Assembly: GCA_009103225.1 (NCBI GenBank)
Contig: RHPI01000890.1
Location: 275,579-339,578, forward strand
Reading direction: 5' to 3'
DNA: 64,000 bases
Origin: Chlorokybus atmophyticus
Taxonomy: Eukaryota > Plantae > Mesostigma and Chlorokybus algae
Both the position numbers and the translations under genes were made by a program. Shown piece by piece: positions 26,570-36,300 of this stretch; the first letter of the stretch is position 1, and every line of letters begins with the position of its first letter. The notes under the pieces are model-generated. The model did no database searches, was not told the DNA's origin, and worked only from the letters and a program-made list of their open reading frames with translations.

Positions 26570-27476
26570 TCACATCAAACACTCCGGCAATCCCATCCTC
26601 ACCCGAAGCATTACGCGGCCATCAATGAGGGCATAAGGAACGGGTCCATAGTCCCGTGAGTCGGTGGAGTTCAGTTTGTTATCCCCTTGCAGCCATACAT
26701 GTCCCTTGGGTATCTGTGCAGTAAGCAGAGGTAAGGCCAGCAATACTGGCAATCCACATTCGGTTGCCAGCACAAACGACTGCATCCAGTGTCGCACCGT
26801 TATGCGGCGAGGCGCCTGCCCTCTCGGCTCAACTAGTATTCTGTCTCCTTCCTGCAAAACAGGCAAGCGCATTGTTGAAAACACAATTGAGAACATGAGC
26901 TGCGCAATGGTAGCACCAACAGACTGTGCACAGCAAACACTGGCGCATGAACAATGTGATTGTGATCTATCAGCTACGAATCTCTGACCAACAATGCAGT
27001 CAACACAGTAGTGTAGTGTAAGCGAGTGAATGCCGTATTGAAGTTGTTGTAAACGCGACTGATCTAGTGTCCAACAACAACGAAACAGGTTTTACGTTGA
27101 GATGATGCACCTCTCACCCAGTGACAAGTAGCAGGCAGAGTTTCTCGCAATATAGTCGCACGTGTGGACATGCGGTAGTGCAAATGCGTACCTTTGCAAG
27201 CAGGCGCTTGAGTAGAACGTCGGTGGGGTTCCAGGGAGAGCGGGCGACGACGACGTCCCCCGGGGAGAGGCGATTAAGGCGGGGGGCGACGCGGTCGATG
27301 AGGACGAGATCGCCGGCGGCATTGAAAGTTGGAAGCATGCTTGGCCCAGTGCAGACGGTCAGAGTGAGCAGGTACGTGCTCATGCAGTGCAGCGAAGCGA
27401 AGGCGTTGGCGTACCGCACCGCCCGCCCCGACGCATCCGCCCACCACGGCCCCAACAACGCCCTGCCCCTCGCCAT
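26570..27476 (-). CDS. IMP1: Mitochondrial inner membrane protease subunit 1-like (S26 signal peptidase family); 3' end uncertain
   Basis: Catalytic Ser box GPSMLPT, Lys box VLLKRL, and IPKGHVWLQGDNKLNSTDSRDYGPVPYALIDGRV, split by GT-AG introns. Confidence 0.88.
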
Positions 27477-30915: not shown

Positions 30916-32372
30916 TGCTCGCGCAAGTCCGCGCAGTTGATGTGTTTTGGGAAGGCTGGAGTGCAGATTGCCACAGGGGGTTTGTAGCAAACAGCAGGCC
31001 ATGTACGGCGGGCAAGTGAGTTTGGCTAGCTAGATAGCTTAGCTGTGCAGTGGATAAAGGCGGGCATGTGGTGTTGTACTCATAAGAGTGTTGTCACTTC
31101 CTAGGTGTTAACTTAGTAGACGGTGGATTGGGTTTTGCAAGTATCTTGGTGTGAGGATATGGGTATTGTGGTAATATAATGCGGTTGCTGAGTTGTTAGT
31201 GATGATGCTCATGGCATTATGTAGGTGCAGGTTGCGCACATAAAGGGAAATTGAATTGAAAAGATTGATATGATACTTTGTGCATGCAAGGCTTTGATGC
31301 GTGGTCACTGATTTTATTATCTTAATACCAGTATCAAGATAATAATAGCAGTTATTGTATTAATGTTACAATACATAACCTGGAAGCTATGTCAAATCCG
31401 TTTGTAGTAACATTCAATATTGTGCAATGGCGCAGTCCAAATTATATACATAGCACACAGTAGTGTACACTAATATTAACAGGTTTATATGAAGGAGCTG
31501 CTGTTAAATAAATAAAAAATTCTCTATTATTGATTTTTTTCATGGTGTACCATGTTACAAATGGTTGCATTGCTTTTAACGTTTTAAAGTGTGTATATCA
31601 TAAATGTGCACATGATGGTAACTATAACGAGCCAGCTTGACTTTGCCATGTTAAGCCGCTGTGTTGTTTTCGCCTGATCGCATTCAGCGGTGCAAAGAGT
31701 TTCCTATCTTTATATACATGCATTGATTACGAATGTATTGCAGCACCATGCACAACATCTATGTACACCAATGTTAGTAGATCTCAGTATGGTACATGGT
31801 TGGATTATTCAACAATTAAGCATATACGAGTCAGCTTTGCGAAAGTGTTGTTATAGCTTGCTTCACCTTGCTGATTTTGTTCTGACTATGTGTGGTGATA
31901 GTACATTATGCGTATAGCGTGATCAGCGCATCTGTGTAACAAATAGGGTATACACTTCTGTAATTAATACAACTAAATTGTTCAGGAATGCATGCAAAGT
32001 TTGAAGCAAGTTTTGAAGTATTGTTTCATGCTTTGGTATGGTTGGATTTGTTAGCAACAATAACTCCCATGCACCATGTGTTGCCATGACTTACCAATTC
32101 AACTAATCTACCGTATAAGGTTACCTGGTCTACCTGATAGGTGGTGAGCGATTGCCCACTGTGGGTCACTCCGCATGGGGGGAGATACATCCACACATGT
32201 TCATAGCTTGATGCCCACTGGCACGGCTTCGGAACCTTACATGTACTCAAACGTCTCGGACTCGGATGAGTGACTCGAGTTGAGTTCAGAGTGAGTCGTT
32301 TGCCAGCCACGGCACACAGGCTTCTGGACGTCAGGCAGTCAAGTGTACCCGTTGAAGCACCTCCCGGCAAAC

Positions 32373-33342
32373 ATGGCGGCGGCGGCGGCGGCGGTGCTGT
32401 CTGTTAGCTCCCAGCCTTGCAGATCAGCAGTATCAATTTCTCGCCCCTTGACTCGGGCGGCCGCGACGTCGACTCGTCCTGCAGCGGTCTCAGCCGCGCC
32501 CCGGCCCAGCCTCGTCCTGGGCGCCTCCGCCTTCAAGCCCCTGCAGCGCAACAGCAGGAGGGGCCTGGTGGTGGTGGCGGCGGCGGCCTCGGATGCCGCC
32601 GCCAGCGACACCGACATCATCGTCAAGGTCAGTCACAGGGCCATGGCATTGTTTCGCTGGTCGGGCGGTTTGTTGACAGCACAACACCCTGGGATTGCCA
32701 GGGCATGGTACCATCTCGCAGTTTAAGAAGCACGGCACTAGCACTGCATCAAACTGCTTCTTTCCTTACTTCTCCGTCGCACCATTCACCGCTGTTGACA
32801 ATGATTATGTGCATGTGTGCATCGACTGCATTGACTTCACGATGTAAGCATGCACGTGCGTGTAACAGTGGACGGAGGAGCTGACGGTGATCGAGGACGA
32901 TATTGAGAAGACGATCAAGGAGGCGAAGGCGCTGGGCGAGGGCCCCGCGGCGGCCAACGAGTGGGACCGCGTGGAGGAGCTCTGCGCCGAGGCCGCCCAC
33001 AAGCGCACCCTCATCAAGGAGAAGACGGAGCGACGCCTCAAGGCCAAGGCGCCCACATACGAGGTCGACCCAGCCACCGTTTCCAGGGTGAGCAACCAAC
33101 GCTTCCATCAAACTGTCAACCACCATCATCAAGCTTGCATGTTTGACAAGTGCATTGATTGGCTTGTTGTGCAGTGGTTGGCGGATCTGGAGAACATCAC
33201 TGGGCGGATAGAGAGGACGATCGCCAAGGCGAAGGCGGCGGAGGGGGCTGCGGCTGTCAACGAGTGGGACCGCGTTGAGGAGCTGCGCGCAGAGGCATCA
33301 CACAAGCGCGAACTCATCAAGGAAGCCACCACCAAATATTGA
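32373..33342 (+). CDS. Plastid-targeted protein with two tandem CP12-like N-terminal modules (exons 32373-32627, 32869-33087, 33175-33342)
   Basis: Ala/Ser/Arg-rich transit peptide ending RRGLVVVAAAA. Two repeats of IE.TI..AKA......NEWDRVEEL.AEA.HKR, matching the CP12 AWD_VEEL core. Phase-0 GT-AG introns. Confidence 0.75.
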
Positions 33343-36300
33343 GTGTGTTCGCTTTCCACAGTTGGGTATTAGGTTTGATGCTCTTCACCTGCCTCCGTGC
33401 GAGTCGTGTGTTGTAGTGCTCGCATGTTATGGCATCATGCGTTGAGGCAGCTACTTATGTAACAAGATCTCCATACAATTGCATGGGAAGCGAGCATTGC
33501 CGACAGCAATTTGTAGCCCATGCCCATCGTTATTCGCTTGGTGAATTTGTATGCATTGCCTACCAAGCTTGCATTGCTGCGCACCTTGAAGTGTATAACA
33601 GACGGTATGCTAGGATATGTGGGTGAATGTCAGAGTGGTCATGCTGTGGGCTCACTGCAGGATGCAGTGTTGGGGGAGTTGTGGTGTTTACATTAGATGT
33701 GCAAGTGGTAGTGGTACAGCTATCATCTGTGAGGAAAAGCGCAATACCCAGCATTGCAATCATGTAGTTTACGCACGAGAAACAATTTGCATTGTCAATT
33801 AGAGGTCAATATGGCCTTTACTTTGCAAGTTACAATGCAAAACATCTTGTTGGATCAATAGCAACTTCAATTGCAATCACAATAGCCATAGCAATGGTAC
33901 TAGTAATAGCAACGCTTACAACTTACTTGACAAGCTTCACGCGAGTCATGTTAGAGGCAGGTGGCATAACCAGAACCATCACTGTTTTTCGGACCCTGGG
34001 TGCAAAACGAGATTTTCAGATATTGCGGTTGTTTCCCTACCCACATGATGATGGGCGAGACAAGGCTTCTTGCAATAGGGAAACTTACAGTTAAGTATAC
34101 ATTTGCGAAGGATATAGAAATGAAGTATACAACAGGTAATCAAGTGACTTGCCATTTGACAACATTAGAAATGTTTCAAAATGGTAGTAGTAAGCATCCG
34201 GACGAAACAATTATTGACAAGCATAAATGAGCTTGCGAAGTATGGGGTAAGAGGAGGAAAGGGGGAAGAGGGGATTCATCTCGATTATTTTTTGTTATAC
34301 CACCGTGCAAGCTGATATGCACAACGCACAAGAAGATGGAGTAGGTAAGAACGAACTGTCCAAAAACTGTGTACGGTACAAGCCACATATACCACATATA
34401 TTTATGTGGAGTCGGCGGCCGGGGGGAGGAGGAGGAGTCGGTGCTAAGGGATTGAGCTTGTTAGCTTGTCAAAAAGTAAACTTCTTATCGTTTGATATAT
34501 ATTACAATAAGGTTGTTATTTTATACATCCCTTATTGAATGGCTTGGTCAGCTCCTTTCATGCCGTACGGGATGTTGTCATTTACGCAATGTACGCGAAG
34601 CCAAAACATAACGACTGAAAACGCTATATCACAAGCAACACCAGCGTGTCACACTATGATATAGCAATATCAACTTGATGTTGTTTTGTTGTAACATCCG
34701 CTGATATAATTTATGTTTGTAACAATACGTTGATATGTTTATGGTGAAATACACGAAATGCAATTGCGTTGCATTTTAACCTTAATATGTCAAAAATATT
34801 ATCTTTATACATATCGCATTTATATTCGTTACATTATACGTTGCATGTATACATTTGTCACTTTTGCATGCCTCTATAAATGGAATAGCAAGTACTTACA
34901 TACATGTAAAAGACCAACTTGCAAAGCTGGATAAAGGCCATTTATGCCAGTTTTGCAAGTCAGGCTTCGACATGTGCCTGCGCAAGGAGTTACCTTAAAC
35001 ATATGGAAAACCAGTGCGGTTAATAGCTAACCACGTGTTTATCAAATTTCGCGGGTAACTTGCAGCTTCAATTGCACGAGTTGCTAATGCACTATGACAT
35101 TAGGTATGCAAGCTGCACAAAAGAAGATCACCGGATCGCTTTTGATGAACAGTACGCAAGACTTGTCTTTGCGCCGCGCAAAGACAATTCTTGCGCACTT
35201 GCGGCAACATAATCTTGGTCATTTTACTGACACATTTAGCACGTACATTATTATGTACATTTTAGCACACCAACACTCAAATTAACACAACCAATATACA
35301 ATCAGCGCTTGTTTACAGGCTGATCGACAGCTACATAAAAGTTACCTAAGCACTACTTGCGTGACGGTGGCTCTTGCCACACAAAAAGAGGTTAATTATG
35401 GAGCCATCTATTTATTTCTTAATAGCATGTTATAACATCTCTGCCGAAGCCGAGAAAAACTACAGCAGGAATACAGATAGCTAAACTTCAAGACACAAAT
35501 TCATGCAGCAGCAAAGAATATATGTTACTTTCGTGCACAGACAGTAAGGAAAGCGCATGCATTCACGATTGTCACGATCTCAGCAGCAGCCTTCTTGTAA
35601 GTGTTTGCATATGTGTCCATTATTGAGACGTAATACACACTATGTGCACTGATATTATACAATGTGTGACAATCAGTTGAATGGTAAAAAGGATTGACAT
35701 GCTATGCATAACATCAATGCAACCTTTGGTGAAATGCATGTAAAAAAACGTTTTTGTTGTAGTTATTACAGTCTGATATATGCGTTTTACCTGATGATTA
35801 CCAATGACAATACTTATGTTATAGACTAGTGATTTTTCTTTTAAACAGTAGTAATGAGCTAGGTAATCAATTAAAAAGTCTAATGTATATAGTATATTAC
35901 ATTCCGATGATGCAATGCATTGTGATTCACTTTGCTTTTTATGCTTTACTGAATGTTACGCAAGGTTGTAAATCGCGTTGAAAGCTTTGCAATTGCAGGT
36001 TTTTGTACCTTCGATTGAGCATTGTTACACAATATGTTTATTTGCTCTTACACGCGAATACTCATATGGTGATCATGACTAGCCCAGTTTAAATTATTAA
36101 TTTATATGCTGCATGCTTTTCGACTTGTAGCTTAACGCTATGGCGAGCCCCCATTTATCACCACTCTGAAGAGGGAGGTTGCCCGTATGTGGCTTGCAAT
36201 TTTTCTTCGTTTGTAAAGTTGTTAAGGAAATAAGCAATTGACAATTAATTGCGTGTTCAATATATCGTGAGTAATTACCGGCTCCAATCACACAAGTTTC

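Follow-up and report, generated by a model that had tools for sequence, protein, structure and literature searches.

Textbooks present CP12 as the protein that switches the Calvin cycle between light and dark, by a mechanism that depends on two disulfides and on the bridging of GAPDH to PRK. A CP12-like nuclear gene in Chlorokybus atmophyticus, located at 32373-33342 on the plus strand of a 64-kb window (the whole stretch of DNA analysed here), raises the question of what such a protein could do when its PRK-facing hairpin is present twice and the cysteine pairs and GAPDH-binding segment of CP12 are missing. The gene comprises three exons, all in phase 0, whose translations in series equal the 213 aa protein of the JGI model jgi/Chlat1/902 in eukprot (hereafter referred to as P0001). 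Its features, in window coordinates, are the following.

32373..32627, plus strand: exon 1, containing the start codon with a (GCG)n alanine run, a transit-peptide-like presequence and the first mature residues, as read from the translation
32628..32868, plus strand: intron 1, 241 nt, GT..AG, phase 0, skipped by spliced contigs from the X1 and X2 runs
32869..33087, plus strand: exon 2, encoding CP12 N-domain module 1 (predicted helical hairpin) and a linker, on the basis of Pfam CP12, PDB matches and AF2 helices
32959..32982, plus strand: EWDRVEEL motif of module 1, the counterpart of the CP12 AWD_VEEL motif in the alignment to 6kez_M and 5nmu_A
33088..33174, plus strand: intron 2, 87 nt, GT..AG, phase 0, in frame and stop-free, skipped by spliced contigs from X1 and X2
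33175..33342, plus strand: exon 3, encoding CP12 N-domain module 2 and the TGA stop, with no C-terminal Cys loop following
33262..33285, plus strand: EWDRVEEL motif of module 2, the second motif copy
33343..33550 at least, plus strand: 3' untranslated region, covered by an X2 contig unbroken from 33174 to 33550

Support for this gene model comes from contigs of two public sequencing runs belonging to two different studies (X1 and X2), which leave out exactly 241 and 87 bases, both gaps having GT..AG ends; exon 1 is covered by transcript contigs over 32404-32625. Their spliced form identifies the X1 and X2 contigs as derived from mature transcripts, the runs themselves lacking an RNA label on record. 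A thin X1 contig within intron 1 (depth 6, compared with about 2,550) is consistent with small amounts of DNA or of RNA that had not been spliced. Contig depths cannot rank expression, and the claim is therefore limited to transcription and splicing of the gene as modelled. Towards the 5' end of the mRNA the contigs break at the (GCG)n run (32368-32403), a repeat that lies at the start codon and encodes Met-Ala6. An open reading frame of 151 aa (32887-33342) runs through the in-frame intron 2, and retention of this intron would insert 29 residues between the modules and give a protein of 242 aa; the contigs show intron 2 only in spliced form. Two additional runs from the same study as X1 (X3 and X4) contain about 5% of the sampled gene words and gave no contig at 95% likeness; these runs may represent other Chlorokybus species with diverged orthologs.

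The segment 32373-33342 forms a GC-rich island (0.57-0.66) flanked by AT-rich spacers, the downstream one extending for 4 kb, and within the gene intron 1 has a lower GC content (0.51) than the exons (0.61-0.71). Upstream of the gene lie a multi-exon alpha-galactosidase gene on the plus strand (about 28.9-30.9 kb; Pfam Melibiase_2, E 1.2e-18), with a weak Melibiase_C match just under the cut-off (21.2 versus 22.9 bits), and a multi-exon S26 signal peptidase gene on the minus strand (26570-27476). The genome being eukaryotic, nothing about the function of the CP12-like gene follows from the identity of its neighbours.

Searches with the Pfam CP12 profile (PF02672, 70 profile positions, curated gathering cut-off of 22.7 bits) revealed matches above the cut-off for both modules: exon 2 scored 28.4 bits (E 2.8e-6) over profile positions 1-48 and exon 3 scored 24.9 bits (E 3.4e-5) over positions 7-49, while the whole protein reached 37.9 bits in two matching stretches. 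In both modules coverage is restricted to positions 1-49 of 70, the N-terminal two-thirds of the profile. Sequence matches in the PDB, accepted up to an E of 10, were limited to CP12 chains (6KEZ, 3QV1, 2LJ9 and 6GFO) and CBS-CP12 (5NMU), with exon 2 matching CP12-2 (6kez_M) and CBS-CP12 (5nmu_A), and exon 3 matching 5nmu_A and 6gfo_E. By Pfam, P0001 is hence a member of the CP12 domain family, and databases automatically label both this protein and its glaucophyte counterparts (described below) as 'CP12 domain' proteins. No other domain was detected in P0001, and the CBS pair (PF00571) gave no match. The motif EWDRVEEL is identical in both modules and retains the Trp, Asp, Val, Glu, Glu and Leu of AWD_VEEL, with the leading Ala replaced by Glu; a pattern back-translated from the motif occurs twice in the window and not once in 100 shuffles. 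The preliminary description of this locus had proposed a CP12-like protein with two exon-encoded modules of the NEWDRVEEL type, and the HMM search, the PDB matches and the placement of one motif copy on each of exons 2 and 3 bear this out.

The same description had pointed to a single cysteine in the mature part and to the lack of a C-terminal cysteine segment, and both observations hold. Of the two cysteines of P0001, Cys16 lies in the presequence, which leaves Cys124 as the only one in the mature part; it is encoded at 32983-32985, directly after the module 1 motif. Alignment to CP12 places no cysteine of the N-terminal pair in either hairpin loop of P0001, and both modules have a loop shorter by 5-6 residues than those of other CP12 domains. 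The CxxxPxxxxC GAPDH-binding loop is absent after either module, the protein ending 22 residues past the second motif. As a single exposed thiol, Cys124 could serve glutathionylation or an intermolecular disulfide.

The photosystem I assembly factor Y3IP1/CEST was considered as an alternative identity for this gene product. Y3IP1/CEST is a roughly 28-kDa mature protein with a C-terminal transmembrane helix. This helix spans A255-F275 (PMC11449065). The helix at the end of P0001 is charged and contains no hydrophobic stretch, and Pfam finds only CP12 in the protein, so this candidate was rejected on the transmembrane helix described for Y3IP1 and on the Pfam result.

The first 73 residues of P0001 contain no Asp or Glu, 20 Ala, 12 Ser and 8 Arg, the first acidic residue appearing no earlier than position 74. 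Transit peptides of the green lineage are commonly acid-free and rich in Ala, Ser and Arg, and from this composition we infer that P0001 is plastid-targeted, with a predicted mature part of about 135 residues. The transit-peptide-like N-terminus noted beforehand is therefore present, and its assignment as a plastid-type presequence is supported in part, by residue composition.

The two modules share 66% protein identity over 50 aligned residues and 70% DNA identity, and are mutual best matches among 33 CP12 hairpins. In a module tree they form a clade with a support of 100/98 on a long stem; the tree has just 46 columns, for which reason only this strongly supported node was used. Exons 2 and 3 are symmetric phase 0 exons and each begins with Trp. 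Together, the sister relationship of the modules, their DNA identity and their residence on symmetric, Trp-initial exons point to an origin of the tandem by internal exon duplication in the Chlorokybus lineage, in agreement with the exon duplication postulated at the outset. The dN/dS between modules is 0.55 and the dS is 0.53, with helix 2 almost unchanged, suggesting that both copies either stayed under constraint or were partly homogenised.

To identify relatives of P0001, an exhaustive HMMER search with its mature part was performed against 1.84 billion protein representatives at E <= 0.001. Only five proteins lay above the threshold: the gene's own model, a 906-aa repeat protein (P0005) rejected as a spurious match, and three glaucophyte proteins of 362-370 aa, from Cyanoptyche gloeocystis (P0002; UniRef A0A7S2JN26), Gloeochaete wittrockiana (P0003) and Cyanophora paradoxa (P0004). 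In each of the glaucophyte proteins a presequence precedes four CP12 N-modules in tandem, which are free of cysteine and are not followed by a GAPDH-binding tail, and the proteins pass the threshold because the scores of several modules add up. The module tree provides no indication of one-to-one orthology between these modules and those of Chlorokybus, which group together, and the two arrays thus probably arose independently, as parallel inventions. A word search with exons 2-3 as query (32869-33339, taken as one contiguous segment and thus including translated intron 2) returned the gene's own model only. Neither this search nor the HMMER search detected an ortholog of P0001 outside the Chlorokybus genome. 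The check for orthologs called for in the preliminary description therefore had a divided outcome: no ortholog was found, yet four-module cysteine-free versions exist in three glaucophytes and the architecture is not unique.

Further searches extended this picture. A word search seeded by a glaucophyte protein added cyanobacterial CBS-CP12 proteins, in which the CBS domain pair is present, and a few heterokont-type proteins. A profile word search yielded 893 CP12 matches, hundreds of them ordinary CP12s, with no second Chlorokybus (Chlat1) CP12 protein among the 120 of these matches listed. A DNA pattern scan of metagenomes for the NEWDRVEEL signature returned one contig (L001), which has no CP12-like reading frame and was dismissed as a chance match. 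The heterokont-type proteins, from Logan/JGI assemblies, include P0038, P0048 and P0050 (207 aa) and P0098 (224 aa), which carry two AWD_VEE modules after a signal peptide followed by AF/GF-xP, together with C-x7/8/10-C pairs; these pairs lie after each module in P0098 and after the second module only in P0038. By their sequence features, these four proteins are a second, cysteine-bearing kind of tandem CP12. Literature searches found no paper on tandem N-domain-only CP12 proteins or on the glaucophyte four-module forms, and none containing both 'Chlorokybus' and 'CP12'; a New Phytologist 2026 paper on GAPB/CP12, its supplements aside, does not name Chlorokybus.

In an AF2 model generated with a seven-row alignment, four predicted helices form two hairpins (residues 3-28 and 32-65 for module 1, and 74-100 and 104-132 for module 2, in model numbering), with a mean pLDDT of 86.5 and a pTM of 0.46, the latter making the mutual placement of the hairpins uncertain. 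The CP12 domain in the CBS-CP12 structure 5npl_A can be superposed on one of the hairpins at 1.2 Å over 44 columns with 45% identity. A Foldseek search of the PDB with the whole model returned no match at E <= 0.001, and the local CBS-CP12 match is the only specific one. VIA-align returned generic helical bundles, among them 8j0h_C, with a Z of 9.1 over 116 residues, and ApoE N-domain rows; some of these matches span the whole model as a four-helix bundle, and Z values near 9.1 are common for helical models. Searching the ESM Atlas by features gave no usable match, and searching it by shape gave generic helical hairpins only, with each hairpin aligned separately. The predicted fold is consistent with what the sequence shows but contributes little of its own.

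Comparison with characterised CP12 systems delimits what P0001 has kept and what it has lost. Canonical CP12 (Arabidopsis CP12-2, 6KEZ; Thermosynechococcus CP12, 6GVE/6GFO) has in common with P0001 the N-terminal region of PF02672, the two-helix hairpin with the W-D-x-V-E-E-L-x-A-E-A-x-H core on helix 2, and a plastid context, which for P0001 is predicted. P0001 differs in having two hairpins instead of one and a mature length of about 135 aa versus about 80 aa, in lacking the N-terminal Cys pair and the CxxxPxxxxC GAPDH-binding domain, in its loop shortened by 5-6 residues, and in being predicted to be ordered, whereas canonical CP12 is conditionally disordered. The glaucophyte proteins resemble P0001 in their presequence, their tandem cysteine-free N-modules and the absence of a GAPDH-binding tail, but carry four AWDAVEEL / KFG..SKEA modules in place of two shortened EWDRVEEL modules. 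CBS-CP12 (5NMU/5NPL), the best local structural match, has a CP12 domain that lowers PRK activity yet enters no ternary complex with GAPDH (PMC6142219), a mode of use that P0001, with no GAPDH-binding loop, would share; its CBS pair, hexamers, AMP dependence and hairpin Cys pair have no equivalent in P0001.

Cyanobacterial CP12 proteins fall into eight classes, one of which is cysteine-free (CP12-0; Stanley et al. 2013; PMC3906501). Likened by description, CP12-0 and P0001 agree in the absence of both Cys pairs; however, CP12-0 is a single-module, prokaryotic protein of unknown function, whereas P0001 has two modules and is eukaryotic. The heterokont tandem forms share with P0001 the presence of two AWD_VEE modules in one protein with predicted plastid targeting, and differ in their Cys pairs after the modules, their signal-peptide-type presequence and their VEEM/VEEV/LEEI motif ends; their modules are very distant from those of Chlorokybus in the module tree. 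The characterised CP12 of Thalassiosira is helical and non-canonical (PMC7992989).

Structural and mutational work on CP12 frames the possible function of P0001. CP12 residues 1-52 constitute a two-helix domain that binds PRK by inserting its acidic AWD_VEEL face into the basic active-site cleft; Asp34 hydrogen-bonds PRK, and changes at the Chlamydomonas counterparts of Trp33, Glu37 and Glu38 abolish complex formation (PMC6800369). Binary CP12-PRK interactions are weak and the ternary complex is held by avidity (PMC6800369), and the complex also forms with CP12 variants in which the N-terminal Cys pair is missing (PMC9406205). The equivalents of Trp33, Asp34, Glu37 and Glu38 are kept in both Chlorokybus modules. 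Gln40, which contacts PRK Asp146 in 6GVE, is replaced by Cys124 in module 1 and by Arg in module 2.

Because these PRK-relevant residues are kept in both modules, the reading we favour, with confidence somewhat short of even, is that P0001 is a redox-insensitive, two-site PRK binder. The acidic side of each hairpin, with its conserved W-D-x-V-E-E-L, would face the basic active site of PRK. Anchoring on GAPDH strengthens the binding of canonical CP12 but is impossible for P0001, and for this reason we propose that the two linked hairpins would supply avidity for dimeric PRK, replacing that anchor. Since there is no disulfide to make or break, PRK binding would not be switched directly by thioredoxin, and P0001 would act as a constitutive or otherwise-controlled inhibitor, stabiliser or tether of PRK, apart from GAPDH regulation. 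The long branch, the shorter loop, the substitution of Ala by Glu before the Trp and the change at Gln40 nevertheless mean that the PRK affinity of the Chlorokybus modules may have been lost. The weakness of binary CP12-PRK contacts and the failure of diatom CP12 to form the PRK complex (PMC7992989) also weigh against this reading.

Alternatively, P0001 may have kept the CP12 hairpin fold for a different job, docking other plastid proteins or serving in a protective or chaperone-like capacity of the kind proposed for non-canonical CP12s, with PRK not being its target. This is the main rival, which we hold to be less likely than PRK binding. CP12 has been described as a moonlighting protein, acting for instance as a metal binder or chaperone (PMC9406205, PMC7992989), and the CP12 of diatoms is a dimer whose level goes up under many stresses and whose partners are FNR and GAPDH, not PRK (PMC7992989). 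The long stem separating the Chlorokybus modules from all other CP12 domains and the altered PRK contact at Gln40 are consistent with such a change of partner, yet what has stayed invariant in both modules is precisely the set of residues of the PRK-facing motif, and no result obtained here indicates an alternative partner.

Two other explanations appear less likely still. The hairpins might pack together, or on other copies of P0001, into a helical bundle, making the protein a structural or oligomerising element whose motif faces serve self-association. The VIA-align matches in which a single four-helix bundle takes up the full model (8j0h_C and the ApoE N-domain) lend themselves to this idea, and such packing, if real, could bury the binding faces; the low pTM, the separate treatment of each hairpin in the ESM Atlas matches and the commonness of comparable Z values among helical models argue against it, and we regard it as improbable. 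Because both Cys pairs and the GAPDH-binding tail are missing, and word and HMMER searches detected no ortholog outside the Chlorokybus genome, P0001 could alternatively be taken for a decaying or functionless CP12 duplicate left without working parts. This is very hard to reconcile with an intact reading frame, canonical splice sites and spliced transcripts in two independent studies, with a motif that is identical in both modules and a dN/dS of 0.55 between them, with confidently predicted helical hairpins, and with the maintenance of a parallel architecture in three glaucophyte genera.

The tandem N-domain-only layout is rare in the sequences surveyed, within a family already known to be architecturally diverse, and P0001 adds an early-diverging streptophyte alga, beside the glaucophyte proteins, to the catalogue of CP12 architectures. 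As the PRK-facing hairpin alone, in two copies and free of the CP12 cysteine pairs, P0001 offers a natural test of whether this hairpin by itself controls or protects PRK, and it poses the second question of whether multivalency can replace GAPDH anchoring. In its broadest and distinctly more speculative form, which we think unlikely as a whole, the proposal would be that Chlorokybus, and in parallel the glaucophytes, turned the PRK-docking hairpin of CP12 into a clamp that holds PRK at several sites and works independently of thiols. If true, this clamp would constitute a layer of Calvin-cycle control that regulates or stabilises PRK, unlinked to either GAPDH or thioredoxin.
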